This document shows, piece by piece, positions 1,800-63,775 of a DNA stretch of 64,000 nucleotides. The stretch covers positions 62,001-126,000 of the IMG/VR virus record IMGVR_UViG_3300029983_000007; one strand, written 5' to 3'. How positions within the stretch are numbered: the stretch's first letter is position 1; each line of letters opens with the position of its first letter. The translations under genes were made by a program, and so were the position numbers. The notes under the pieces were generated by a model that ran no database searches, was not told the origin of the DNA, and saw nothing but the letters and a program-made list of their open reading frames with translations.

Positions 1800-2390
1800 T
1801 TACAATAAATGTGGTCTTGCTTCAGCAATTCCAGCATTTGTTACTTGATACCATTTTGGATTGTATTCAGATAGATTGTTAGCTCCTCCATAAGATAATG
1901 CTGAACGAACTCCATAAATTAATCCTTCTATTACAAATCTTACTCCACCTTTGAATGGTATAGTTGTTGACTCTCCTTCTACATTTCTCTCAGCTTGACC
2001 ATGAACAGTTTTAGTTTCCAATGATGCAGAGCCTCTATAGCGTTTATATAAACCATTAGGACTCTCTATAACCTTACCTGGTGATTCTTCTGTTCCTGCT
2101 AATAGAGAACCTAACATGATTGTTGATGATCCTAATGCAAGAGCTTTAGAAATATCTCCACTTGATCTAATTCCACCATCAGCCATAACTGGTACTGTTG
2201 CTACATTTAAAATTTCTATTAAACTTGTCACATTTGGAACACCAAATCCTGTCTTAATCCTTGTTGTACAAAGAGAATTATGAACAACAATACCATTTAT
2301 ATTATACGAATGTGTTTTTTCTACTGTTAAATCATAAACTTTGCCTGTATAATTCTTTTTCTCAATGCTTTTTATTTCTACTAATTTCAT
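1800..2390 (-). CDS. Split intein C-half fused to C-terminal extein of GuaB/GuaC-family (IMPDH/GMP reductase) enzyme
   Basis: VYDLTVEKTHSYNINGIVVHN|SLCTTRIKTGFG; then ADGGI, KALALG, MLGSLLAGTEESPG, YRGSAS. Confidence 0.92.
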   Translation of the reverse strand: MKLVEIKSIEKKNYTGKVYDLTVEKTHSYNINGIVVHNSLCTTRIKTGFGVPNVTSLIEILNVATVPVMADGGIRSSGDISKALALGSSTIMLGSLLAGTEESPGKVIESPNGLYKRYRGSASLETKTVHGQAERNVEGESTTIPFKGGVRFVIEGLIYGVRSALSYGGANNLSEYNPKWYQVTNAGIAEARPHLL

Positions 2391-2512
2391 ATTATATCTT
2401 TTAATTTTTTAATAAAACTTCCATCATTTATCTCATTCTCCCAAATTCTAATTAATTTAAAATTGTGTTCTAATGCAAATTTATTTTTCTTTATATCTTT
2501 TTCAAATTTCAA
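2387..2512 (-). pseudogene. Internally deleted Vsr-like homing endonuclease relic between intein halves
   Basis: 41-aa frame LKFEKDIKKNKFALEHNFKLIRIWENEINDGSFIKKLKDII; overlaps IntN stop and IntC ATG. Confidence 0.7.
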
Positions 2513-3371
2513 CTAAAAAATATTTATCAGTTAAATTTCCTGCTGGTATCCATTCAGCATACTCTTCAATATTTGATGAGTTAACTAAACCTTTATATTT
2601 TATATTTACAACATAAAATTCATGATTTTTTGTGCATTCTATGCCATTTATAATAATAATTTCCTCATTTCTATCAAACTCTAATTTATTTAATACTTTA
2701 TTGAGTTCTCCATTATGACTATAAACTTCATCTCCAATTTTTACATCAATTATATCAATATATCCTTCTGAAGTTTTAACTTTCATGCTAGGTGTAAAAC
2801 AGCCTCCACCAATACCACATCTTAGTCCATCAGCTCCCCAATTTTGTAAATCAATAGCTGCTTCTGATGTAGCAATATTACCTGCAATTATATCCACTCC
2901 TAAATCTAATCCTTTAATTGCTTCGATTGCTTTTTTTACATTTATGTGATGACCATGTGCAACATCAATAAGAATAACATTTACTCCTGCTTCAATTAAT
3001 GATTTGGATCTTTCTAAAAAATCTCCGTTTGAACCTACTGCTGCCATTACTGGAATTTTGTGCCTTATTTTATCTTGATTGAAAGGATCATATGAACTAT
3101 TCTCAATACTTGTAATTAATTTTTTAATTTCATTTGCCTGTTCTTCAATAGACATAAATCTATGAATACATCCTACTCCTCCTAATTGAAACATTTTAAA
3201 TGCCATTTCATGTTCACAAACTGTGTCCATGGGTGATGCTACTAATGGTATCATCAACTCAAAATTTGTCGATAATTTTGTTCTTAAACTAATTTTATTT
3301 CTATGTTTAACTTCACTGTAAAATGGTATGAGTTGAATATCATCATACGTTAACGCTATGTTATTTGTCAT
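2502..3371 (-). CDS. N-terminal extein of GuaB/GuaC-family enzyme fused to split intein N-half
   Basis: LTYDDI, SPMDTV, GGVGCIHR, IDVAHGH, AGNIAT, GIGGG|CFTPSMKV...CTKNHEFYV. Confidence 0.92.
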   Translation of the reverse strand: MTNNIALTYDDIQLIPFYSEVKHRNKISLRTKLSTNFELMIPLVASPMDTVCEHEMAFKMFQLGGVGCIHRFMSIEEQANEIKKLITSIENSSYDPFNQDKIRHKIPVMAAVGSNGDFLERSKSLIEAGVNVILIDVAHGHHINVKKAIEAIKGLDLGVDIIAGNIATSEAAIDLQNWGADGLRCGIGGGCFTPSMKVKTSEGYIDIIDVKIGDEVYSHNGELNKVLNKLEFDRNEEIIIINGIECTKNHEFYVVNIKYKGLVNSSNIEEYAEWIPAGNLTDKYFLVEI

Positions 3372-3852: not shown

Positions 3853-4245
3853 TTAATAGTTATCGTTACTTACCATTTGAATATATGTGTTAATTACTCC
3901 TGTGATACCATATTTTTCAAATTTTTTACGTAATTCTTCTTCTTGTTCTGATGTACGATCTTTAAATTCAATCACTTCTCCGTCATCTAATCTTCCTAAT
4001 GATTCTCCTACTATAAGAGTATTATAGTCTTTTTCTCCAAAATAATTACCATCTACTTCAACACTAAAATCATTGTCAATTTTATTTGAAAAAAATTCAA
4101 ATTTATCATAATCATCTTCAATGTTATCAAATTCTTCGTCTTTAATGTTTAAGAATTTTGCTAACTCATAAATAGTAAGTTTAATTCCTCTTACAACGAA
4201 AGAAGAACTACTTGAATTGCTTACAAATCCACTTCTAATTTTCAT
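3853..4245 (-). CDS. NSSSSS-leader family protein
   Basis: MKIRSGFVSNSSSSSF. Confidence 0.85.
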   Translation of the reverse strand: MKIRSGFVSNSSSSSFVVRGIKLTIYELAKFLNIKDEEFDNIEDDYDKFEFFSNKIDNDFSVEVDGNYFGEKDYNTLIVGESLGRLDDGEVIEFKDRTSEQEEELRKKFEKYGITGVINTYIQMVSNDNY

Positions 4246-4262: not shown

Positions 4263-4703
4263 TTAATAATTTCCTCCACTTTGTATGTGAATGACATCAT
4301 TGTTTACATTTATTCCTGTTTCACACAAATATCCTTCTAATCCGTCTCCAGAATCATCTGATGCAGAGCCTTCATAATAACGATATTCTTTATTTAATAT
4401 TTTCACTAAATCTTCTCTTGGTATGTGAGGATATCCTTGATCAATTATTTCATCTATCATTTCGTCATCTGATAATTTATTACCTGAATCACAATAATTT
4501 TCAAATATATCTTTAATGCTCATTTCTTTAAGATTTCTAATCATCCAATCTGATAGTCCATTTGCAAAGTCAAATAATATTGAATTTTCATTCAAATCAA
4601 ACAACTTCATAAGAGTATCTTTTGATAATTCTTTTTCATTTTTTACAGTAACAATGAAAGAACTACTACTGCTATTACTAACAAATCCATTTCTTAATTT
4701 CAT
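4263..4703 (-). CDS. NSSSSS-leader family protein
   Basis: MKLRNGFVSNSSSSSF. Confidence 0.85.
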   Translation of the reverse strand: MKLRNGFVSNSSSSSFIVTVKNEKELSKDTLMKLFDLNENSILFDFANGLSDWMIRNLKEMSIKDIFENYCDSGNKLSDDEMIDEIIDQGYPHIPREDLVKILNKEYRYYEGSASDDSGDGLEGYLCETGINVNNDVIHIQSGGNY

Positions 4704-5059
4704 GATTTTTTATTTAATAGTTCTGTTATTTTTTTACTATCAGCGACAACAATTTGACCGTCATCTGGTCCACCTTCTACAGTTGCTATTACATATGCAC
4801 TAATTACATCATTTAAATTATCAAAAAAATCATATTCATGATTTTTATCATACTTTTTTGAATAATCATATATTTCTTCATTGTAGAAACCCCCGTCATC
4901 AACTAGCCTTTTTAACAATTCTTTAAATCCATCTAATGGAAAATCTTCATATTCATCAGTGATCTTTTTATAGTCAACAATATCAAGAAAATTCTCAGGT
5001 AATAGAATTACAAAAGACGAGCTACTTGAGTTGCTAACAAATCCTTTTCTTATTTTCAT
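4700..5059 (-). CDS. NSSSSS-leader family protein
   Basis: MKIRKGFVSNSSSSSF. Confidence 0.85.
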   Translation of the reverse strand: MKIRKGFVSNSSSSSFVILLPENFLDIVDYKKITDEYEDFPLDGFKELLKRLVDDGGFYNEEIYDYSKKYDKNHEYDFFDNLNDVISAYVIATVEGGPDDGQIVVADSKKITELLNKKS

Positions 5060-5098: not shown

Positions 5099-5740
5099 TT
5101 AGTTTATTAATCTATCTATTCCGATAGCAAATCCAACTCCACCATCATATTCTCCTCCACCACAAATTTGTTTAGATGAACCTAATTTTTCGCAAGTTAT
5201 TTCAAATCCCTTACCATCTTTATAATAATCAAGTCCTCTTCTAACATCGTTATTGACAACATAATCATCAACATTAGTATTGAAATTGTTTGTTAATAAT
5301 TTCATTGCTAAATGTTGCAAGTTTGCTCCATCAGAAAGATAATCATGAGATGGATTTAAAATTTCAACTCCAAGTTGAGTGAATTGCCTATATCTTCCCG
5401 ACTGTGGTTTTTCCCCACGAAAGCATTCACAAACATAGAACAATAATACATCATTTTCATTTTTGTATGTTGTTTTAGATAGTTTTTGCGCTATTGCAGT
5501 ATATTCAGGAGCTAAACACAAATATCTATCTCCTCTATCTTTGAAATTGTACATCATGTTGTTATTTTCTTCTCCTACCTTATCTTTGAATAATTCTTGA
5601 AATTGTATAATAGGAATTTGTATTTCTTCAAAATGATATTCATCAATTAATATTTTAATCATTGAATTTATCAATTCTCTTTTTTCATTACCAACTAAAA
5701 TCCTAGTTCCTTTGTAACAAGTTTCTTTTATTATTTTCAT
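5099..5740 (-). CDS. Histidyl-tRNA synthetase-like catalytic core lacking anticodon-binding domain
   Basis: MYNFKDRG, LAPEYT, FRGEKPQSGRYRQFTQLGVE (motif 2), RGLDYY, GGGEY...GFAIGIDRL (motif 3); only 213 aa. Confidence 0.85.
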   Translation of the reverse strand: MKIIKETCYKGTRILVGNEKRELINSMIKILIDEYHFEEIQIPIIQFQELFKDKVGEENNNMMYNFKDRGDRYLCLAPEYTAIAQKLSKTTYKNENDVLLFYVCECFRGEKPQSGRYRQFTQLGVEILNPSHDYLSDGANLQHLAMKLLTNNFNTNVDDYVVNNDVRRGLDYYKDGKGFEITCEKLGSSKQICGGGEYDGGVGFAIGIDRLIN

Positions 5741-20867: not shown

Positions 20868-22742
20868 TTATTTTATTTCCTCAAAATCCACGTCTGTTAC
20901 ATTTTCAGAATCATCTTTTTTGTCAGATGAATTGCTTTCATTCGTTGACTGATTTTTTGATTCTTCATAAAGTTTACCACTAATGTTTTGCCAAACATCA
21001 TTAAGTTCTTTGGTGTATTTATCAATATTATCAACATTTTGAGTTTTGTGAGCTTCTTTAAGATTATCAAGTTTAGAATTCAATTCAGTTTTGTTTTCTT
21101 CATTCAATTTATCACCAAATTCTTCAATTTGTTTTTCAGTTTGAAAAATCATTGAGTCAGCTTGATTCAACTTATCAACTTTTTCTTTTTCTTTCTTATC
21201 AGCATCAGAATTTTGTTCAGCTTCCATTTTCATTCTTTCAATCTCTTCTTTTGTTAGAGATGAATTACCTTCAATCCTAATGTCATTCTTTTTTCCTGTT
21301 GCTTTATCAACTGCAGTAACTGTCAAAATATTATTTGCATCAATTGAAAACGAAATTTCTATTTGCGGTACTCCTCGTCTGGCTGGCATAATTCCATCTA
21401 AATTAAAAGTTCCCAACATTTTATTATCCTTAAACATACTTCTATTTCCAGTTGAAACATTAATCTGAACACCAGGCTGATTGTCAGTGGCTGTACTGAA
21501 TATTTGTGTCTTAGTTGTAGGAATTGTTGTATTAGCCTCTACCATGACACTGGCTACACCGCCCATACTCTCCAGTGAGAAGTTTAAAGCTGTAACATCG
21601 AGTAATAAGATGTCAGTTGTATCACCAGCAAGAACAGATGCTTGTATAGCTGCACCTGATGCAATTGCAGTATCAGGATTAAGTGACTTATTCGCTTTCT
21701 TACCAAAATATTTTTCAATACTTTCTGACAAATATGGAATTCTAGTGCTACCTCCAACAAGTACAATTTCGTCAATATCTGAAACTTTCTTACCACTTTT
21801 ATTCATTGATGATTGAATCAATGATATTGTTTTATCAACATAGAATTGAATCAATTGTTCAAATTTAGATCTTGTTAATTTTTGAACCAAATGTTTAGGT
21901 TGTCCATCTACAGCAGTGATGTATGGTAAATTTATTTCTGTTTGTGTAGTATTAGACAATTCTATTTTTGCTTTTTCTGATGCTTCTGTAACACGTTGTA
22001 GAGCCATTGGATCTTTACGAATATCAACGCCTGTTTCTTTTAAAAATTCATCAGATATAAAATTCACAAGTGCGTCATCAATTAAATTACCACCTAAATC
22101 TAAATCACCATCAGTTCCAATAACTTCAAATAATCCGTCCTCTATATCTAAAACTGAAAAATCACTTGTACACCCACCACTATCAACTATCATATAAAGT
22201 TTACCAGTTTTATCTTTAATATTTAATGATGCTGCTGTTGGTTCAGATATAATTCTATCAACAGTAAATCCTGCTATTTCACCTGCAACTTTTGTACTGC
22301 TTCTTTCATCTGAATTGAAATATGCTGGAGTTGTTATGACCGCATTGGTTACATTTGTTCCAAGGTAATCTTCTGCTGTTTTTTTCATTTTTTGAAGGAT
22401 CATTGCAGAAATTTCTTCTGGTGAATATATTCTTTCACCAATTTTTACACCAGCCTTACCATTATTATCAACTATATCATAAGGACGTTTAAGATGTTTA
22501 ACTTCCTCATAAGTTCTACCAATAAGTCTTTTGATATTAAAAATTGTGTTTTTTGGATTTAATGCTGCTTGTCTTTTTGCAGATTCACCAACTTTAATTT
22601 CTCCTGTTTTTTCATCAAATGATACAATTGAAGGAGTTGATAGCGATCCTTCTGAATTAGGTATGACAATTGTTTGTCCACCTTCTACTATAGATACGGC
22701 TGAATTGTATGAACCTAAATCTATTCCAATAATTTTTCCCAT
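20868..22742 (-). CDS. dnaK: Hsp70 chaperone DnaK
   Basis: IIGIDLG, TPAYF, LVGGSTRIP, GVPQIEISF, C-terminal DVDFEEIK. Confidence 0.97.
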   Translation of the reverse strand: MGKIIGIDLGSYNSAVSIVEGGQTIVIPNSEGSLSTPSIVSFDEKTGEIKVGESAKRQAALNPKNTIFNIKRLIGRTYEEVKHLKRPYDIVDNNGKAGVKIGERIYSPEEISAMILQKMKKTAEDYLGTNVTNAVITTPAYFNSDERSSTKVAGEIAGFTVDRIISEPTAASLNIKDKTGKLYMIVDSGGCTSDFSVLDIEDGLFEVIGTDGDLDLGGNLIDDALVNFISDEFLKETGVDIRKDPMALQRVTEASEKAKIELSNTTQTEINLPYITAVDGQPKHLVQKLTRSKFEQLIQFYVDKTISLIQSSMNKSGKKVSDIDEIVLVGGSTRIPYLSESIEKYFGKKANKSLNPDTAIASGAAIQASVLAGDTTDILLLDVTALNFSLESMGGVASVMVEANTTIPTTKTQIFSTATDNQPGVQINVSTGNRSMFKDNKMLGTFNLDGIMPARRGVPQIEISFSIDANNILTVTAVDKATGKKNDIRIEGNSSLTKEEIERMKMEAEQNSDADKKEKEKVDKLNQADSMIFQTEKQIEEFGDKLNEENKTELNSKLDNLKEAHKTQNVDNIDKYTKELNDVWQNISGKLYEESKNQSTNESNSSDKKDDSENVTDVDFEEIK

Positions 22743-23578: not shown

Positions 23579-23610
23579 CAAAGATAATAAAAATATTTGT
23601 ATCTTACAAA
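23579..23610 (-). promoter_or_regulatory. Bacteroidota-type promoter
   Basis: TTTG-N20-TATCTTTG. Confidence 0.7.
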
Positions 23611-23617
23611 TTTTCGC

Positions 23618-23653
23618 AAAAAAAGGATGAAAATAATTTTTTCATCCTTTTTT
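23618..23653. terminator. Intrinsic terminator after rtcB
   Basis: AAAAAAGGATGAAAA...TTTTCATCCTTTTTT. Confidence 0.75.
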
Positions 23654-23655
23654 AA

Positions 23656-24528
23656 TTAAAACTTTTTCATTTTTTGGTAAGAAATTTCATTTCTTTCGTT
23701 ACTACGTTGCTTATCTTTCTTTTTTTGTTCTTTCTTGTCCTTCCAAGATGTACCTTCAGATTTATCTTTGATATTTAAGATTGGTTTGATTTTATCAAGA
23801 ATCAAAGCAGTAGGTCCAATTGCTTTTTCAATCATTTCAGAGTTTTTGTAAGCAAATGGTGATTCATCAATTGTACTTTTACATACAGAAGTTGAATATA
23901 TACCTTTCATTACTCTCTGAAAGTCTTTTAAATCAACTGACTCTTTTGCTTTTGATCTTGACATCAAACGACCAGAACCATGTGGAGCTGAGTTATTCCA
24001 ATCTTCATTTGATTTACCTTCACATATAAGTATTCCATCTCTCATATTGAATGGTATAATCATTTTTTCTCCAACATATGAAGATATAGCACCTTTTCTT
24101 ATGATAAAGTCTTTGAAATCCACATAGTTATGTATTGAATGAATTTCTTCATCAAATTTTTTGATATTCAATGCTTTTTTTATCAAAGACAACATAGTTT
24201 TTCTGCTCCATAGAGCATATTGTTGAGCAAAAATCATATCAAATAGATAACCAATAAGATATTCTCCGTCTAAATATTCTTTGCCAATATTAAGACTGTA
24301 TCTTGTTCTCAATTCTTTTATTTTTTTATCAATATCAGATTTTGGATAAGTATTCATAGTAATGTCATCCAATTCCATGTTATATTCTTTGGTTGCAACA
24401 AATACTTTACCATTTGCTACTTTAGTCCAGTGTTCAGCTATTTTCAAACCAAAGTTTCTTGAGCCAGAGTGAACTGTTACCCAATAATCATTAGTCTTAT
24501 CTGACTTACCAAGTTCAATAAAGTGATT
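23656..24528 (-). CDS. rtcB: RtcB RNA ligase, 3' exon
   Basis: NHFIE, VHSGSRNFG, HNY, RKGA, SAPHGSGR, IDESPFAYK. Confidence 0.93.
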   Translation of the reverse strand, partial: NHFIELGKSDKTNDYWVTVHSGSRNFGLKIAEHWTKVANGKVFVATKEYNMELDDITMNTYPKSDIDKKIKELRTRYSLNIGKEYLDGEYLIGYLFDMIFAQQYALWSRKTMLSLIKKALNIKKFDEEIHSIHNYVDFKDFIIRKGAISSYVGEKMIIPFNMRDGILICEGKSNEDWNNSAPHGSGRLMSRSKAKESVDLKDFQRVMKGIYSTSVCKSTIDESPFAYKNSEMIEKAIGPTALILDKIKPILNIKDKSEGTSWKDKKEQKKKDKQRSNERNEISYQKMKKF

Positions 24529-25622
24529 CAATTTTGTTACTATTATTTTAATTTCAATCTAAATAACCTCATTTTTATAGATTGCTTTGTTCTTTTAAGA
24601 TTTTCTATTGATTCAGATATATCATTATTTATAATATAATTATCTTCATAGTCTGTCCATATTTTACGTTCAAAATCTATTTTTTTGATATTAATTGGTC
24701 TTTCCCAATTTAATATTTTTTGAGCAGAATCATATTTTCTATTTATACTCATACAATCTTTATAATATAATATTTCAATTATTTTTTGAGAATTTTCATT
24801 CATCACCATTATATTATATAAGTTATCTCTTTTATTTTTATTTGTTATTTTTTTATATCCAATAATGTTAGATAAAAAAACAACAAATTGTTCAGCAAGT
24901 TTACTAGAACATGTAACTAAAGATATGAAAGGTAATCCTTTTTTTGTAAATCCTAATGATCCATCGCCATCTATAACTCCTCTCCAGTAATCAATTTCTA
25001 TTATATTATCTGGTTTCTGAATTGTGTGTGATTTTTTACCAACAGGTAAATACTTTTTAAATTCATTTCTTGTTTCTAATTCAAATATTTTTAATGCTGA
25101 TGTATTTGAAATATATTTGTATTCTTTAATATTAATATTTCTTGTTCTTTCAGTTATTGAAACATTACAATTAAGAATAGATTTTATATATTTTAATATA
25201 TTATCATCACTTTTATTTATTTCAAGTGTGATTCTTCCTCTATTTCTAGTTGATTCGTATAAATTACCATCAGTTTGTAATAAACCTATAATGTATGCAT
25301 GTTTCTTATTTAAAATGTCTATTTTCATAATGTGTTTTTATTTGTATATATAATTTCACTTTATTGAAAATTTACATTTCATTGAAATTGTAATAACGAG
25401 ATAGACATTTCTGCTATCTTCAATATCTTCTTATTAAATATTGTTCAGAATGTACCTTTTACCTTTGTGTATTACAGTGAGATAAAACAAGTCCCTCCAT
25501 TCGTTACAGGGTGTTATCTAAAATGACAGAGCACTTCCCTCGGTATTAGCATCACAGCCGTCCACCGATTTGGACGATTTTAACTACTATTAGCTATTAA
25601 CTAATACGGTGGCAATCAATTC
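24529..25622 (-). mobile_element. Group I intron in rtcB carrying a LAGLIDADG endonuclease
   Basis: Interrupts GGG|NHF; exon GGTGGT pairs with IGS GCCACC (U.G at splice site); TGATT/AATCA P10; AAATCGGT/ATACCGAG P4; GAATG/CATTC P7; terminal G. Confidence 0.9.
24543..25328 (-). CDS. Intron-encoded double-motif LAGLIDADG homing endonuclease
   Basis: YIIGLLQTDGNL and YWRGVIDGDGSL; own late-type promoter at 25345-25353. Confidence 0.9.
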   Translation of the reverse strand: MKIDILNKKHAYIIGLLQTDGNLYESTRNRGRITLEINKSDDNILKYIKSILNCNVSITERTRNINIKEYKYISNTSALKIFELETRNEFKKYLPVGKKSHTIQKPDNIIEIDYWRGVIDGDGSLGFTKKGLPFISLVTCSSKLAEQFVVFLSNIIGYKKITNKNKRDNLYNIMVMNENSQKIIEILYYKDCMSINRKYDSAQKILNWERPINIKKIDFERKIWTDYEDNYIINNDISESIENLKRTKQSIKMRLFRLKLK

Positions 25623-42850: not shown

Positions 42851-44191
42851 ATGGCTAAAAAAGAAAAAAGTGATAAAATATTTGTACTTGATACAAGTGT
42901 AATACTTTATGATCACAATGCAATTTACAATTTTGAAGAAAATGATGTTGCAATTCCTATTACAGTATTCGAAGAATTAGATGATTTCAAAAAGGGTAAT
43001 GACACAATTAATTATGAGGCAAGAGAATTTATTAGAAAAACAGATAAATTAGCATCTAAATGTAATTTGAGCGATTGGATTCCTATTGGTAAAGGAAAAG
43101 GTAGAGTTAAGGTTGTGATGAATGAAACAACTGGAACAACTGATGCTTGTTTAGTTTTTAAATCTACAAAGCCAGATCATTTAATTTTAAATACTGCGTT
43201 GTCATTGGTAGAAGAATATCCTGACAAAAAGATTATACTTGTATCAAAAGATATAAATTTAAGATTGAAAGCTAAATCTTTAAATGTTAATTCTGAAGAT
43301 TATTTAACAGGTAAAATTAAAGATACTGATAAATTATTTACAGGTAGATCAACAATTGAATTAGATACAGATGATATAATTACTAAACTATATCAAGATA
43401 ATGTTTGTACACCACAAGAACTTGGTATTACAGATTTATTAAATAATAAATATTTAATTATTAAATCATCTATTTCTGCTGCATCAGCTTTAGCATATTA
43501 TAATTCATCAAAACAGCAAGTGGAAAGAATAGATAAAGAAACATGTTATAAAATAACACCAAGAAATTCTGAACAAGTATTTGCGTTACATGCATTATTA
43601 AATCCTGATGTTAAATTAGTATCATTACAAGGAGTTGCAGGAACAGGAAAAACATTGTTAGCTTTGGCTGCTGCACTTAGTCAGAAGAGAAATTTTAAAC
43701 AAATATTTTTGGCGAGACCAATTGTGCCATTAAGTGGAAAAGACATAGGCTATCTTCCTGGCGATGTTGATCAGAAGACATCAGTGTACATGATGCCTCT
43801 GTTCGATAATCTAAAATTTATACAAAGTCAGTTTAAAGATACTGATAAGGAATATAAATTCATTCAAGATTGTATTAAAGACGAAAAAGTAATAATAACT
43901 CCTTTGACATATATTCGTGGACGTAGTATTTCAAATGTTTTTTTTATTGTTGACGAATCTCAGAACCTTACTCCTCATGAAATAAAAACTATTATAACAA
44001 GAGCAGGAGAAGGTACAAAGATTGTGTTCACTGGAGATATAAATCAGATCGACACACCTTATTTAGATGCTCAAAGTAATGGATTATCACATTTAATTGC
44101 TAAAATAAAAGGACAACCTATTTATTCTCATGTGACTCTTGAAAAAGGAGAACGTTCTGAATTAGCAAATATTGCAAATGAATTACTTTAA
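42851..44191 (+). CDS. phoH: PIN-PhoH (PhoH2/YlaK-like) protein
   Basis: N-terminal VLDTSV PIN domain; GVAGTGKT, YIRGRS, DESQN, GDINQID. Confidence 0.92.
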   Translation: MAKKEKSDKIFVLDTSVILYDHNAIYNFEENDVAIPITVFEELDDFKKGNDTINYEAREFIRKTDKLASKCNLSDWIPIGKGKGRVKVVMNETTGTTDACLVFKSTKPDHLILNTALSLVEEYPDKKIILVSKDINLRLKAKSLNVNSEDYLTGKIKDTDKLFTGRSTIELDTDDIITKLYQDNVCTPQELGITDLLNNKYLIIKSSISAASALAYYNSSKQQVERIDKETCYKITPRNSEQVFALHALLNPDVKLVSLQGVAGTGKTLLALAAALSQKRNFKQIFLARPIVPLSGKDIGYLPGDVDQKTSVYMMPLFDNLKFIQSQFKDTDKEYKFIQDCIKDEKVIITPLTYIRGRSISNVFFIVDESQNLTPHEIKTIITRAGEGTKIVFTGDINQIDTPYLDAQSNGLSHLIAKIKGQPIYSHVTLEKGERSELANIANELL

Positions 44192-48068: not shown

Positions 48069-48140
48069 TTGAGCAAGAGGTCTGATTTGAACAGAATCTT
48101 TTTACTGGAAGTAAAAAGCATTAACATATGCTACCTCTGC
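48069..48140 (-). tRNA. Degenerate tRNA-Gly(TCC)-like gene
   Basis: GCAGAGG/CCTCTTGC bulged acceptor; GCAT/ATGC D-stem; TTTTA-CTTCCAG-TAAAA anticodon arm; TCTG-TTCAAAT-CAGA T-arm; ends TCAA; terminator follows. Confidence 0.6.
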
Positions 48141-48311: not shown

Positions 48312-48464
48312 ATGAAAAACAAATCAAAAATTTCGATATCATTAAAAAATGAATTGATAGATTATTTAAATGACTTGAGTTTAAATAAATCTAAATTTAT
48401 AGAAAAATTAATAGAAGAGTATAAAATAATAAAAATAAATAATGATAATAACAAAAAAAGTTAA
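48312..48464 (+). CDS. Small ribbon-helix-helix protein upstream of endonuclease
   Basis: MKNKSKISISLKNELIDYLNDLSLNKSKFIEKLIEEY; below track cut-off. Confidence 0.7.
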   Translation: MKNKSKISISLKNELIDYLNDLSLNKSKFIEKLIEEYKIIKINNDNNKKS

Positions 48465-49431
48465 AATTCATATTAAAGGAATATCAATAAAAAGATATAA
48501 AAAATTAGGTTATAATGTTGATACTAAAGGATTAAATACTATTAATGTTGAAGATCTTCCTAAATGTAGTAATATTAAAGTCATGGTGAAATGTGATAAT
48601 TGTGATTATGAAAAAGAATTAAAGATTCAAGATTATTATTTATCTTTTAAAAATAATAAATATTGTTGTAATAAATGCTCATATGAAAATTATAAAAAAA
48701 CAATGTTAGAAAGATATGGAGTTGAAAATGGATTTCAATATAAAGACATAAAAGAAAAATCTAATAGCACTAAAATAAAATTATATGGAGATGAAAATTA
48801 CAATAATAGAGAAAAAGCGATAGAAACATGTTTAGATAAATATGGTGTTGAAAATCCTAATCAAAATTATAAAATAAAAAAAAAATCTAATAATACTTGC
48901 TTAGAAAAATATGGATTTGAAACAGCATCTAAAAATGAAAAAGTAAAGGAAAAAATAAAAAAAACAAATTTGAAAAGATGGAACAGTACATGTACATTAC
49001 ATTCAGAAAAACAAATTGATAAAATTAAACAAATATTTATTGATAAATATGGAGTTGATAATCCTATGAAGAATTTAGAAATATTTTTAAAAGCCCAAAA
49101 AACAGCTCTAAATCGTAAAAAATTTAAAGAAACTGAATTATTATATCAAGGTACATATGAATTAGATTTTTTAAATAATTATTATGAAAAAATTAATATT
49201 GAAAATGGTAAATCAATAAAAATAATTTATAATAATAATAAAACTGTGTATCATTCTGATTTTTTTTTATCTGAAAAAAATTTAATTATAGAAATAAAAT
49301 CATCATATTGGTATAATAGATATTATGATAAAAATATAATTAAACAAAAAGAATGTGAAAAATTAGGATATAATTATATCATAATAATAGATAAAAATTA
49401 TAATGATTTTAATAAATTAATAATGATTTAA
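48442..49431 (+). CDS. Putative homing endonuclease: Zn-finger, KYGVEN repeats, PD-(D/E)XK nuclease
   Basis: CDNC/CNKC; several (K/R)YGV(E/D)N repeats; YHSDFFL...IIEIKS. Confidence 0.75.
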   Translation: MIITKKVKIHIKGISIKRYKKLGYNVDTKGLNTINVEDLPKCSNIKVMVKCDNCDYEKELKIQDYYLSFKNNKYCCNKCSYENYKKTMLERYGVENGFQYKDIKEKSNSTKIKLYGDENYNNREKAIETCLDKYGVENPNQNYKIKKKSNNTCLEKYGFETASKNEKVKEKIKKTNLKRWNSTCTLHSEKQIDKIKQIFIDKYGVDNPMKNLEIFLKAQKTALNRKKFKETELLYQGTYELDFLNNYYEKINIENGKSIKIIYNNNKTVYHSDFFLSEKNLIIEIKSSYWYNRYYDKNIIKQKECEKLGYNYIIIIDKNYNDFNKLIMI

Positions 49432-49470: not shown

Positions 49471-50952
49471 TTATATATTTGTTTCTTCTAATTTTTTTAA
49501 TTCATCTTTTAACTTTTCAAGTTCTTCGTGTTTTTGATTCATTACTTTCTTCCATTTTTTTCTATCAGAATAAACTTCTCCCATTACTTGAGTAACAACA
49601 CCATCTTCATTCTTAAATACTGATCCATTGAGAGTTACAATATCATCAGGTTCAATTGTTAATTGATGTCCATTAAATAATGAGTAATCTTTACCTTTTA
49701 CTTTTTGTCCTTTATATGAGTCTGCTGATATGTTAAATTCTCTCATTGTGGTAGGATACAGGGATGCGAAGTCAAAACAACAAGTCCATGTTGCCATTCC
49801 TCTCACTGGATCTTTAACCCATCCACCTTTAATAGATTCAGATTCAGAATCACTATATTCACTATCTTCATTTCTTACAAGTACAATATTCTTTTGATCT
49901 CTTAATTTTTCTCTTAAAATTCCTTCTGTCAGTGCAAGTGTTGAAATTGCATCTTTAATTTTAATTTTACCTAATACAGCCATACCATAAAGAATATCTA
50001 CATATTTCATTTTAACGTGAATTCTTTGTACCAGACAACTATCTACAGCATTATAAAAAACGAATTTCTTAAAATCTTCTCTATGTAATCTTTTTAAATC
50101 TCCATCATAGTTAATTTTCTTGACTTCTTTACCAAGAATTTTTTCTGATGCAAAATCAAGAGATAAACTTTCTTTAACTTTAACAGATTGATCCCATTTC
50201 TTAAATAATTCCATATAATCCACTATAACTCTATGAGCTGGTAATTCAGCATAATCTAAATGTATTGCATTAGGAGGATTGAATGGTTTGTTAAGTTTCT
50301 TTGTGAAAGATGCTACTTCAGGTTCTAGTCCTAATTTTCTTGCCCTTGCAACTAAGAATGTCCAGTCATATGCAATAAAATTCCAGCCAGTCATTACTGG
50401 CATTTTTGGAACTAATTTATTGAAAAATGCATGAAGCATATCAAATTCAGTTTTATAATGAACATATTTAAATTTATAATCAGTATCAAATTTTTTGAAG
50501 TGAGTATTTAAATCTGATTCAATGTTTTCAATTTGTTTTGAATCCAGTGATTCTGTTCCAATTACTAACACTTTATTCTTATTTACAATTGATATTGTTT
50601 GAATCGCACTTTCTGCTAAATGAGGTTCAGGTTTTTTATCTAATATTTCATTTTCAATATCGACAAAGAATATATCTGGTTCATTATAACTATATATTTC
50701 ATTTTTTTCATCTTCATCAAAACTATCAATAAAATCATAAATAGAATATCTATTAGGATATTTTGTGAATATTTCTTTTACAGCACTACCATCCCATGTA
50801 ACATATCTACCAGATTTTTCTGAATCATCATCAGTAGTTTTTATGAATTTTGTACATCTTGCCCAAGGTTTATATTTTAATTTTATTTGACCTGATTTAT
50901 CTATGTAACTTATTATAAGGTTATTATTTCTGTATTCTGTGTCTATAAGCAT
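49471..50952 (-). CDS. Family B DNA polymerase, N-terminal subunit (exonuclease plus motif A) of a split gene
   Basis: FVDIE, TGWNFIAYD, YNAVDS, GGWV, FDFASLYP; ends in the fingers helix; no KxxxNSxYG or DTDS. Confidence 0.88.
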   Translation of the reverse strand: MLIDTEYRNNNLIISYIDKSGQIKLKYKPWARCTKFIKTTDDDSEKSGRYVTWDGSAVKEIFTKYPNRYSIYDFIDSFDEDEKNEIYSYNEPDIFFVDIENEILDKKPEPHLAESAIQTISIVNKNKVLVIGTESLDSKQIENIESDLNTHFKKFDTDYKFKYVHYKTEFDMLHAFFNKLVPKMPVMTGWNFIAYDWTFLVARARKLGLEPEVASFTKKLNKPFNPPNAIHLDYAELPAHRVIVDYMELFKKWDQSVKVKESLSLDFASEKILGKEVKKINYDGDLKRLHREDFKKFVFYNAVDSCLVQRIHVKMKYVDILYGMAVLGKIKIKDAISTLALTEGILREKLRDQKNIVLVRNEDSEYSDSESESIKGGWVKDPVRGMATWTCCFDFASLYPTTMREFNISADSYKGQKVKGKDYSLFNGHQLTIEPDDIVTLNGSVFKNEDGVVTQVMGEVYSDRKKWKKVMNQKHEELEKLKDELKKLEETNI

Positions 50953-51111: not shown

Positions 51112-54687
<3,576 letters not shown>

Positions 54688-61312: not shown

Positions 61313-63775
61313 TTAAATTTCATATTGTATTTCCAATATTTTATTTCTTTCATAAAATACTATTAGCAATTTGTTTGTATCTTCAAATAATTTTATTTTC
61401 GGAATACACCAACTTACACTATTTTTATTTAAAGATATTTCAGATATTGTGTAATATGTTTTATTAGTATTTAAATCTTTAATGTCAATATTTAATGACT
61501 GCAAATCATCACCATTATAATATATCATCAATTTATTTTCATTTCTATCATAACTTATTTTTATGTTATTTTTATCTAAATTGTAATCAATTATATATTT
61601 TTTAAAATCAAATAATTTAGGATTTTCTACCAATTTTGATTCAATTATTCTATCAGTTATCATTTCAGGAGTTATGTTAATAGAACATTCAAATTGTTTA
61701 TCTGTATCTTTATGCATAGGACACCAATTCCAATCACCTGGATCAAATTTATGAGTATTAAAACATCCATTACAAACATTAAAATTGTGTATATTTATGT
61801 TATTAGTTTTAAACTCACAAAAAGGATTAGAAAAACCTGACATCATTACTACTTTTTTACCTACAGCCCATGCCAACCAACTCAATCCTGAACCAATTCC
61901 AATATAGAATTCACACCATTTTAATTGATTTATTCTGTGCTCAATAGGAAAATCACCAGTGTTATCTATAATATTTTTTAGATTTGTTGATTGCTTACTT
62001 ATTGTCATAACTTTATACCCTTGCGTATTAAGCCAATCAACTAAAATTTGCCATCCTTTATTACTATCTTTACAAGGATAATGCCAATGTTTAGAGTTCG
62101 CAGTTGAGAATTGCCCAATACAAATATATTTTTCTTTAATTGGTCTAACGCCTTCAGGAATTTCAATCTTTGGTATTATTTCTTCATATTCTAATCCAAG
62201 AATATCACTTGCTGTTTTTTGTAATGGTATGGTTTTATAATCAATCGGATTTTTATTACTATCAAATGGTGAATACCATCCAATTTTATATTTAGCATAT
62301 AAATTTTCTGTGTTTGCTTTTCCTGGATCAACAAATGTTATTTCTGGGTATTGTTTTATAAACCAACTATTCCAAAATGTTGAGCACTGAATATTACAAT
62401 TATGTTTTTTTCTAAATTCTTCTACATATGGAAACCATGCTAATGTATCTCCAATTGATTTACTTTCTATTGTTATTAAAACATTTCTATTTGTTAAATC
62501 AAAATCATGTGTAATTAATTCGTTATTATGAAATATATTAATTTTATACTCCTTATAACATTCATTATTTGTACGACACCAATTATTGTTATTTAATGTT
62601 TTTTTGTATATAATTTCTTTTGTATTTTTATCTATTATTTCAACATCAAACTCAGATTTTACATCTCCAAGAATTTCTACATTTGCACCGTTAATAAAAC
62701 TAATATTATAATCATATTGTGGTTCTATTAATTTTTGAATTGTTTTATTAAGATTAAGTGTGTCATTATATTCTGTTGTTAATCTTGATTCAAATGTTAC
62801 ATTATTATCTATTCTTTTAATATTAAAATTATCCAAAATTCTTTTAGAATCTTTATCAACATTCATTGTTAAATATTTAATATTTTTGCATGAATCATAA
62901 GTATCTAAATATGTATTAAGATTATTTAAATAAATAGGCATATTATATGATGTTGCTTCTTTAACAGCTAACGGGTTCAACTCTAATATAGAAGAATGAA
63001 TTAACAAATCAGATGCTTGGTAAAATGTATCAACGTCACTTCTTTCTCCATGTATTATACAATTAATTGGTTTATTATTTAACAAAGGTTTCCAATAATC
63101 TTCAAAATTTTCTGCTTGATTACCAACAAAGTGAAATTGTATTTTATAGTCTTTTAATTTTTCAGCTATTTCAAATACATATCCTTGATTTTTTCCTTTT
63201 GTGAATAACCCAACATTTAAAACATGAAAATACTCAGAATCAAATTTTAATTCGTCAATAGCTAATCCTTTATTTGCTATTAATTTTTCAGATGGATATT
63301 CAATAATAGAAGATGGAATATTGAATTTGTTATATTGTAGTTGTGAATATTTTGATACAAATAAAAATTTATCTGGGAAATATTTTTTTTTGCTAATATC
63401 AAAAGTTGAAGTATGAGTAGTTTCTATTATTTTATATGGTCTGTCATTTCTATATAACCAATTTATATGCTCATTTCTCATTCCAAAAATAAATATTTCT
63501 GGTATTTCTTCCATATGAATAATATCAGGATTGATATTATTAATTATATCTTCAAACAAATCACGCTTTGTTTCATTTTCATTATCTCCAAGCGAAATGA
63601 ATTTATCTCCTAATAACTCAATAAGTCTATTCCTCTGCACAACAAAACTCCAAGAAATTTGTCTATATTCAATAAGATATACATCATTTGTTTTTATTAA
63701 ATATTCTACTCTTTTAAGAGCTACCATCGGAAGTCCTCCTGTAGATCCGTGAGGAATTATTATAAGTATTTTCAT
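61313..63775 (-). CDS. Bifunctional GT4 plus autotransporter O-heptosyltransferase-like (TibC/Aah) glycosyltransferase
   Basis: NVGLFTKGKNQ, ELNPLAVKEA (GT4); SIGDTLAWFPY, SGLSWLAW, CNGCF...WCP...FECS. Confidence 0.8.
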   Translation of the reverse strand: MKILIIIPHGSTGGLPMVALKRVEYLIKTNDVYLIEYRQISWSFVVQRNRLIELLGDKFISLGDNENETKRDLFEDIINNINPDIIHMEEIPEIFIFGMRNEHINWLYRNDRPYKIIETTHTSTFDISKKKYFPDKFLFVSKYSQLQYNKFNIPSSIIEYPSEKLIANKGLAIDELKFDSEYFHVLNVGLFTKGKNQGYVFEIAEKLKDYKIQFHFVGNQAENFEDYWKPLLNNKPINCIIHGERSDVDTFYQASDLLIHSSILELNPLAVKEATSYNMPIYLNNLNTYLDTYDSCKNIKYLTMNVDKDSKRILDNFNIKRIDNNVTFESRLTTEYNDTLNLNKTIQKLIEPQYDYNISFINGANVEILGDVKSEFDVEIIDKNTKEIIYKKTLNNNNWCRTNNECYKEYKINIFHNNELITHDFDLTNRNVLITIESKSIGDTLAWFPYVEEFRKKHNCNIQCSTFWNSWFIKQYPEITFVDPGKANTENLYAKYKIGWYSPFDSNKNPIDYKTIPLQKTASDILGLEYEEIIPKIEIPEGVRPIKEKYICIGQFSTANSKHWHYPCKDSNKGWQILVDWLNTQGYKVMTISKQSTNLKNIIDNTGDFPIEHRINQLKWCEFYIGIGSGLSWLAWAVGKKVVMMSGFSNPFCEFKTNNINIHNFNVCNGCFNTHKFDPGDWNWCPMHKDTDKQFECSINITPEMITDRIIESKLVENPKLFDFKKYIIDYNLDKNNIKISYDRNENKLMIYYNGDDLQSLNIDIKDLNTNKTYYTISEISLNKNSVSWCIPKIKLFEDTNKLLIVFYERNKILEIQYEI

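Follow-up and report, generated by a model that had tools for sequence, protein, structure and literature searches.

A probable naturally split intein without its homing endonuclease in an IMPDH/GMP reductase-fold gene of a very large phage from peat and lake water

The stretch of DNA analysed here (the window) covers 64,000 nucleotides (nt), positions 62,001 to 126,000 of IMG/VR record IMGVR_UViG_3300029983_000007, and positions given without a contig name refer to it. Between positions 1800 and 3371, a gene with the fold shared by inosine monophosphate (IMP) dehydrogenase (IMPDH) and guanosine monophosphate (GMP) reductase is broken over two open reading frames (ORFs), each of which carries one half of an intein. 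With a probability of roughly 0.8, this locus is a naturally split class-1 intein in a phage gene, in which the endonuclease has been lost and splicing has been kept. A naturally split intein beside the catalytic Cys was already proposed in the initial annotation, and both ORFs, independent assemblies, empty alleles, the selection acting on the locus and a model of the complex bear this out.

Both ORFs are located on the minus strand. The N-ORF (2502-3371) encodes 289 residues, of which 190 enzyme residues ending in LRCGIGGG are followed by the 99-residue N-terminal intein half (IntN), running from CFTPSMKVKT to YFLVEI and the stop codon. The C-ORF (1800-2390) encodes 196 residues and starts with MKLVEIKSIEKK...IVVHN followed by SLCTTR: a 38-residue C-terminal intein half (IntC), MKLVEIKSIEKKNYTGKVYDLTVEKTHSYNINGIVVHN, ending in His-Asn, precedes 158 enzyme residues which begin SLCTTRIKTGFG. 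The halves were searched separately in Pfam, NCBIfam and PHROG scans, and the naturally uninterrupted orthologue L005:4001-5032 stood in for the spliced enzyme. The N-ORF matches model positions 1-179 of Pfam PF00478, the IMPDH/GMP-reductase barrel (E-value 1.5e-51), and the C-ORF matches positions 178-345 (E-value 4e-41), so the two enzyme pieces abut exactly. The N-extein (2802-3371, enzyme residues 1-190) is collinear with L005:4001-5032 and about 79% identical to it. The C-extein (1803-2276, stop codon at 1800-1802) opens with Ser+1-Leu-Cys-TTR. IntN, delimited from the sequence and its homologues, extends over 2505-2801, from Cys1 (2799-2801) to Ile99, and ends at a TGA stop (2502-2504). 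IntC covers 2277-2390, with the ATG of the C-ORF at 2388-2390, and matches the intein C-terminal models TIGR01443 (E-value 1e-7, above the cut-off) and PF14890 (E-value 5e-8); the Hint-model matches of the N-ORF tail are weak. As the Pfam halves and the intein-model matches fall there, the enzyme is cut between the loop glycines and Ser-Leu-Cys, that is between GIGGG and SLCTTR within the active-site loop, two residues ahead of the catalytic Cys. IntN and IntC are separated by 114 nt, with a spacer at 2391-2501.

Relatives without the intein reveal what the uninterrupted gene looks like. Five syntenic contigs (L004-L008), which share the upstream 151-residue gene and the paralogues starting MKIR.GFVSNSSSSSF with the window locus, encode one uninterrupted 344-residue protein reading ...GIGGGSLCTTRIKTGFGVPN... 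at this site. The gene is likewise uninterrupted in L009 and L012, and in all of these contigs (L004-L009 and L012) the site reads GIGGGSLCTTR or GIGNGALCTTR. The junction GIGGGSLCTTR, which trans-splicing would restore according to the earlier proposal, is confirmed by these intein-less orthologues, and the expected spliced product would count 190 + 158 = 348 residues. Two sequencing runs (X1 and X2) from separate samples and separate studies also hold a joint of position 2274 to position 2806 with six letters in between, a net loss of 525 nt, which is exactly IntN, spacer and IntC. Because the six letters match the L005 junction GGC GGA AGT, this empty allele belongs to the relative with about 79% identity. 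The same peat samples therefore contain the allele with the intein alongside the empty one, even though the endonuclease is dead. The contig depth of the intein-less L005-type allele is similar in these samples.

A rival explanation is an assembly or gene-calling artefact, in which the intein is truly contiguous or the gene uninterrupted and the stop and start arise from misassembly; a contiguous intein hidden by an assembly error was one caveat of the initial annotation. Such an artefact is conceivable, since AT-rich repeats can yield chimeric metagenome assemblies and the intein-less form is present in the same samples. However, IMG/VR contig L003, from another metagenome, has the identical arrangement with both ORFs at 100% identity. 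A 669-nt Logan contig found in both X1 and X2 spans 2167-2835 without a single difference, crossing the whole break from C-extein through IntC, spacer and IntN to N-extein. The N-half protein is present on 13 contigs, the stretch occurs in peat metagenomes of many studies as well as in lake water, and the same split is seen in thirty other clusters, while the intein-less joint comes from a different phage, L005. As far as contigs can show, the artefact is already refuted, and we consider its remaining chance negligible.

The intein itself appears complete. All class-1 splicing residues are present, i.e. Cys1 (N-ORF residue 191) as N-terminal nucleophile, Thr57-x-x-His60 as T57-K-N-H60 of block B (CTKNHEF), His37-Asn38 at the end of IntC and Ser+1, with VVHN and the following Ser at C-ORF residues 35-39; they are kept in all 32 clusters with this intein. 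Compared to three relatives, the ratio of nonsynonymous to synonymous substitution rates (dN/dS) is 0.19-0.24 for IntN, 0.03-0.05 for IntC and 0.09-0.14 for the C-extein. Both intein halves are under purifying selection, constrained like the enzyme. A complex was modelled from N-ORF residues 186-289 and C-ORF residues 1-44, together with three controls. The IntN-IntC pair reaches an ipSAE of 0.81 versus 0.01 for the best control, a score which may partly reflect memory of solved inteins; at least 93% of the contacts recur between runs, and the partner pLDDT is 80. Of 78 solved complexes, 51 attain the ipSAE mark used, compared to 2 of 108 mismatched pairs.

The two ORFs are probably co-transcribed, as they lie on the same strand, 114 nt apart, and a sequence scan found no terminator-like site between them; a promoter scan (17 sites versus 14.6 expected) was uninformative. 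They would then be translated separately from one transcript, after which IntN (99 residues) and IntC (38 residues) are predicted by the model to come together as a HINT fold. The standard four-step splicing reaction would rely on Cys1, the Thr-x-x-His block, the terminal His-Asn and Ser+1; it would link ...GIGGG to SLCTTR... and yield, by comparison with the one-piece form of the relatives, a 348-residue enzyme. Without an endonuclease, the intein would have lost homing, with splicing still being required for the enzyme to work.

Two observations weigh against splicing as proposed. The complex model indicates likeness and not binding, because inteins have already been solved and the score may be memory. 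In addition, the locus was found in no RNA run searched, and splicing is thus inferred. A dead locus, in which splicing ceased after endonuclease loss and the ORFs are decaying fragments of a dispensable gene, would fit the decay of the endonuclease, the accessory metabolic nature of the gene and the uninterrupted copy with which a close relative lives. Nevertheless, both ORFs are intact with every catalytic residue of intein and enzyme in place, the intein halves have a dN/dS (0.03-0.24) as low as the extein, and the split form persists in variants P0122 and P0123, which are 95-99% identical; we regard a dead locus as improbable. The two halves might also assemble via their intein parts into an active, non-covalent enzyme without any splicing, as split proteins joined by intein halves can have activity and the break is situated in a loop. 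This loop is the phosphate-binding active-site loop, however, and Cys1, Asn38 and Ser+1, required by splicing only, are strictly conserved in the 32 clusters. Furthermore, fast splicing in vitro is known for the allelic IMPDH-1 intein (PMC11168065), which leaves a non-covalent enzyme highly improbable and splicing the preferred reading.

The spacer, whose origin was missed in the initial annotation, points to how the element once moved. It holds a 41-residue ORF (2387-2512) without family match in the Pfam, NCBIfam and PHROG scans. By BLASTP to endonucleases of related loci, however, the segment 2387-2501 (minus strand) is identified as the last ~38 codons of an endonuclease gene, EKDIKKNKFALEHNFKLIRIWENEINDGSFIKKLKDII followed by a stop. 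Residues 6-37 of the spacer ORF align with residues 255-286 of the free-standing 292-residue endonuclease of L010 (E-value 3e-8), whose gene sits between the two intein halves in L010/L011. In the closer relative L017, the C-terminus of an intact 289-residue endonuclease (...EKDIKKTEFALKHNFKLIRIWENEINDGSFIEKLKDIL, then the stop) is 89% identical to the relic. Both endonucleases (L010 and L017) have a NUMOD3 match and a Vsr/DUF559-like core below the curated cut-offs. The relic follows immediately on the IntN stop, and at its other end its TGA shares bases with the ATG of the C-ORF. Some 250 of the ~289 codons have been deleted, among them those for the NUMOD3 repeats and for the catalytic core (...ILIEIDGDYWHG...). 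Judged from its sequence, the relic cannot be an active nuclease, and the spacer is identified as what is left of the gene for a free-standing NUMOD3/Vsr-like homing endonuclease, which formerly mobilised the element. As only this relic remains, the locus represents the endonuclease-lost stage (step III, gp41-7 type).

An 11-nt direct repeat, AAAAGATATAA, read from the sequence at 2491-2501 and 2392-2402 (minus strand, starts 99 nt apart), brackets the relic and may be the scar of a deletion or may serve as the substrate of another one. A deletion between the copies would shorten the distance from IntN to IntC to 15 nt and bring both into one frame, interrupted by the TGA stop alone. In L015, a relative with a contiguous intein, the corresponding distance is exactly 15 nt, beginning TCA.

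A database search restricted to IntN, with a reach limited by query length and shared words, identified at least 32 clusters with this intein, all at the same site. Thirty are split, with N-halves of 219-297 residues, and two (P0017 and P0126) are contiguous. A full endonuclease gene is located between the halves in L017, L010/L011, L101 and L102, an endonuclease pseudogene of ~405 nt with stops in L018 (1972-2373), an IntN ORF reading into an endonuclease fragment (...ILIEMDGDY) in P0129, and a 157-nt gap without a called gene at the P0135 locus. Contiguous mini-inteins are present in L015 (linker SDMNI) and L016 (linker TN); those of P0017 and P0126 have 139-142 residues and both keep the start Met of IntC internally. 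In one homologue, the 458-residue P0011, ~110 barrel residues, among them the active-site loop, are duplicated internally, possibly through an assembly artefact or a tandem duplication.

In an IntN tree (about 100 columns, midpoint root only), the contiguous forms are nested in a clade (support 95/92) of otherwise split forms and are never paired in the bootstrap trees. Split forms with an endonuclease lie on either side of the midpoint root, at the deepest split of the tree, so this state is probably the ancestral one. Most economically, the endonuclease would then have decayed in steps and been lost several times, and the halves would have re-fused twice, in the separate lineages of P0017 and P0126, making gene fracture reversible. 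We give this history even odds, because of the ~100 columns, the midpoint root and the limited search, and because an endonuclease may instead have repeatedly invaded a contiguous ancestor.

The closest known system is the IMPDH-1 split intein from the GOS (Global Ocean Sampling) metagenome (Dassa et al. 2009, PMC2677866; Pinto et al. 2020, PMC7090010), which also features in Carvajal-Vallejos et al. (2012) as cited in PMC11168065. The likeness to IMPDH-1 claimed from the letters alone is supported. Host gene family and insertion site are the same, with a native junction GGG/SIC for IMPDH-1 (supplement of PMC7090010) and GGG/SLC here. Both have Cys1, Ser+1 and the terminal His-Asn, halves of similar size (~99-101 and 38-40 residues) and the motifs CF.P..., FDR.EEI..ING..CTKNHEFYV and HSYN..G.VVHN. 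Identity is ~46% for IntN and ~68% for IntC, from a hand count against an error-bearing, machine-read table. IMPDH-1 differs in having an intact endonuclease gene between its halves, of which ~38 codons are left here, and in originating from Lake Gatun or Delaware Bay reads, in contrast to a peat and lake phage of ~0.7 Mb. IMPDH-1 itself is absent among the database matches of the IntN search, and a literature search yielded no 'IMPDH intein' going by another name.

According to Dassa et al. (PMC2677866), three IMPDH loci each have an intervening endonuclease, while the gp41-7 locus has lost its endonuclease, corresponding to step III of the fractured-gene model. In the window, a 38-codon 3' relic takes the place of the free-standing endonuclease between the halves. 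As in gp41-7, two adjacent, co-oriented ORFs carry IntN and IntC without a working endonuclease in between. Host gene and intein are different, and a recognisable 3' relic is still in place here as a direct sign of loss. The remaining stages are all found among the relatives of the window locus, which have a full endonuclease, a ~405-nt pseudogene, a 157-nt gap, a fused mini-intein or an empty site. The Vsr-like endonuclease family was described in fractured genes in the same study (PMC2677866). The relic aligns with the L010 and L017 C-termini including the ...FKLIRIWE... motif, and its stop overlaps the start of the downstream ORF, as in many fractured-gene loci, although most codons and the catalytic core are deleted here. 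The window locus is the IMPDH-site counterpart of the gp41-7 stage, within an intein family that was already known.

Whether the spliced enzyme is a GMP reductase (GMP + NADPH to IMP + NH3) rather than an IMP dehydrogenase, as suggested in the initial annotation, is less clear; we lean moderately towards the reductase. The features named at the time, a GMP-reductase-like flap and the lack of CBS domains, stand, while the family assignment does not reach any curated cut-off. No CBS domain is found in the enzyme, which proves little because CBS-less IMPDHs exist (solved structures 3ffs and 1eep). The flap from YRGxxS to EG counts 14 residues in all 120 homologues, with R-N-V-E-G in 117. In alignment, ...ERNVEG of the enzyme corresponds to ...YRAAEG of E. 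coli GuaC at equal spacing, while in E. coli GuaB a longer insert comes after DRYFQ. The Arg-Tyr dyad, which in Hedstrom's work is said to activate water for the hydrolysis step of IMPDH, is found in none of the 120 homologues. The enzyme thus combines the Cys-x-Thr loop (SLCTTR), Glu-Gly after a short flap and the lack of both CBS domain and Arg-Tyr dyad, a GMP-reductase-like set which is also compatible with an uncharacterised third activity. We consider such another activity unlikely.

Several results weigh against a GMP reductase. The L005 orthologue scores highest with the IMPDH model TIGR01302 (294 bits, cut-off 481.5), compared to 211 bits (cut-off 344) for PRK05458, the best of the GMP reductase models compared (TIGR01305, TIGR01306, PRK05458 and PRK05096), and JGI names the orthologues IMP dehydrogenase. 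Also, a search of the 330-kb record, ~46% of the genome, did not reveal purA, so a rerouting of GMP to AMP has no support from neighbouring genes. The control L013, an unrelated viral gene, is a true GMP reductase by score (414 bits). An IMP dehydrogenase spliced from a split intein as described here would fit the higher model score, the 41% identity to E. coli GuaB with a lower identity to GuaC, the CBS-less IMPDHs among solved structures, the JGI annotation of relatives and the name of IMPDH-1. Against it stand the missing dyad, the short flap with GMP reductase-like R-x-x-E-G spacing, a score under the 481.5-bit cut-off and the NCBI name of the orthologues, guanosine monophosphate reductase (both the NCBI and JGI names being automatic). 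Moreover, three Bacteroidota genomes with orthologues of 65-67% identity each already have a canonical GuaB (614-632 bits), and a canonical GuaC was not found in them. Altogether, an IMP dehydrogenase remains a serious but rather doubtful alternative.

Among solved structures, the C-extein is best matched by 3r2g, an IMPDH-like protein that is short and has no CBS domain. Cellular orthologues are closest (65-68% identical) in metagenome-assembled genomes of Chitinophagaceae and other Bacteroidota, some on megabase contigs. These short CBS-less proteins resemble the phage enzyme in length (~345-350 residues), in the loop G(I/V)GGGSLCTTR and in the 14-residue flap ending RNV-EG; the window copy differs in being interrupted by a split intein. 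We know of no enzyme assay on any protein of this subfamily. Mycobacterial GuaB1, which is GuaB-like, was shown to be a GMP reductase (PMC9790621). A literature search for a phage GMP reductase found nothing.

The record is a 330-kb linear IMG/VR entry with a CheckV completeness of 46%. The N-half protein is also present on a contig of 711,471 bp, and the host of the intein is a very large phage of roughly 0.7 Mb, with a G+C content of 24.9%, from peat and lake water. Family matches pointing to a phage include a T4-like PolB, PhoH and a tail fibre. A search for the capsid of nucleocytoplasmic large DNA viruses gave no match, but neither did its control, making this search uninformative. The enzyme's nearest cellular relatives make Chitinophagaceae/Bacteroidota a possible host lineage. 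An intein scan of the 330-kb record returned this match only.

At least six paralogues starting MKIR.GFVSNSSSSSF flank the split gene (306-989, 1009-1311, 1325-1837, 3853-4245, 4263-4703 and 4700-5059, all on the minus strand) and are also present in L004-L009; their sole match is phrog_7397 (function unknown). Next to them, a 213-residue ORF (5099-5740, minus strand), conserved in L017 (760-1425), matches histidyl-tRNA synthetase in its catalytic core only (HisZ-like or a truncated HisRS). Further away, the window encodes Hsp70/DnaK (20868-22742, minus strand, 666 bits), a PIN-PhoH fusion (42851-44191, plus strand), a tRNA-Gly(TCC) (48071-48140, minus strand), a collagen-repeat tail-fibre-like protein of 1191 residues (51112-54687, minus strand), a radical-SAM protein and an ankyrin protein. 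The family-B DNA polymerase is divided over two genes ~87 kb apart, without an intein motif at the break. Its 493-residue N-part (49471-50952, minus strand) matches phrog_2062, a family of N-parts, and the other polymerase gene is found at G000:C1 ~23,600-25,000 (plus strand). The N-part is adjoined by a 329-residue ORF (48442-49431, plus strand) with a DUF7487 and a weak zinc-finger match, which may be homing-endonuclease-like.

IMPDH-1 is among the four fastest natural split inteins in use for protein ligation. The value of the window intein as a new protein-engineering tool, proposed in the initial annotation, is lowered because dozens of allelic variants are already in public data, and orthogonality to IMPDH-1 is doubtful because the likeness is so great; most variants are probably not orthogonal to IMPDH-1 or to one another. 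Together with its ~30 split relatives, the window copy provides a ready set of natural variants (46-99% identical) in which speed, junction tolerance and cross-reactivity can be compared.

For the phage, a conversion of GMP to IMP would make sense at a G+C content of 24.9%: a GMP-reductase-like enzyme in a very AT-rich megaphage possibly channels guanine nucleotides to the adenine pool. As a tool, the split intein is incremental, and its main interest is evolutionary. Within a single gene, the locus and its relatives show all stages of the fractured-gene homing cycle: the empty site, the full element, the endonuclease in decay, the split intein on its own and the contiguous mini-intein. The endonuclease-lost stage is clear in the window, and its relatives fill the other stages, perhaps including re-fusion.

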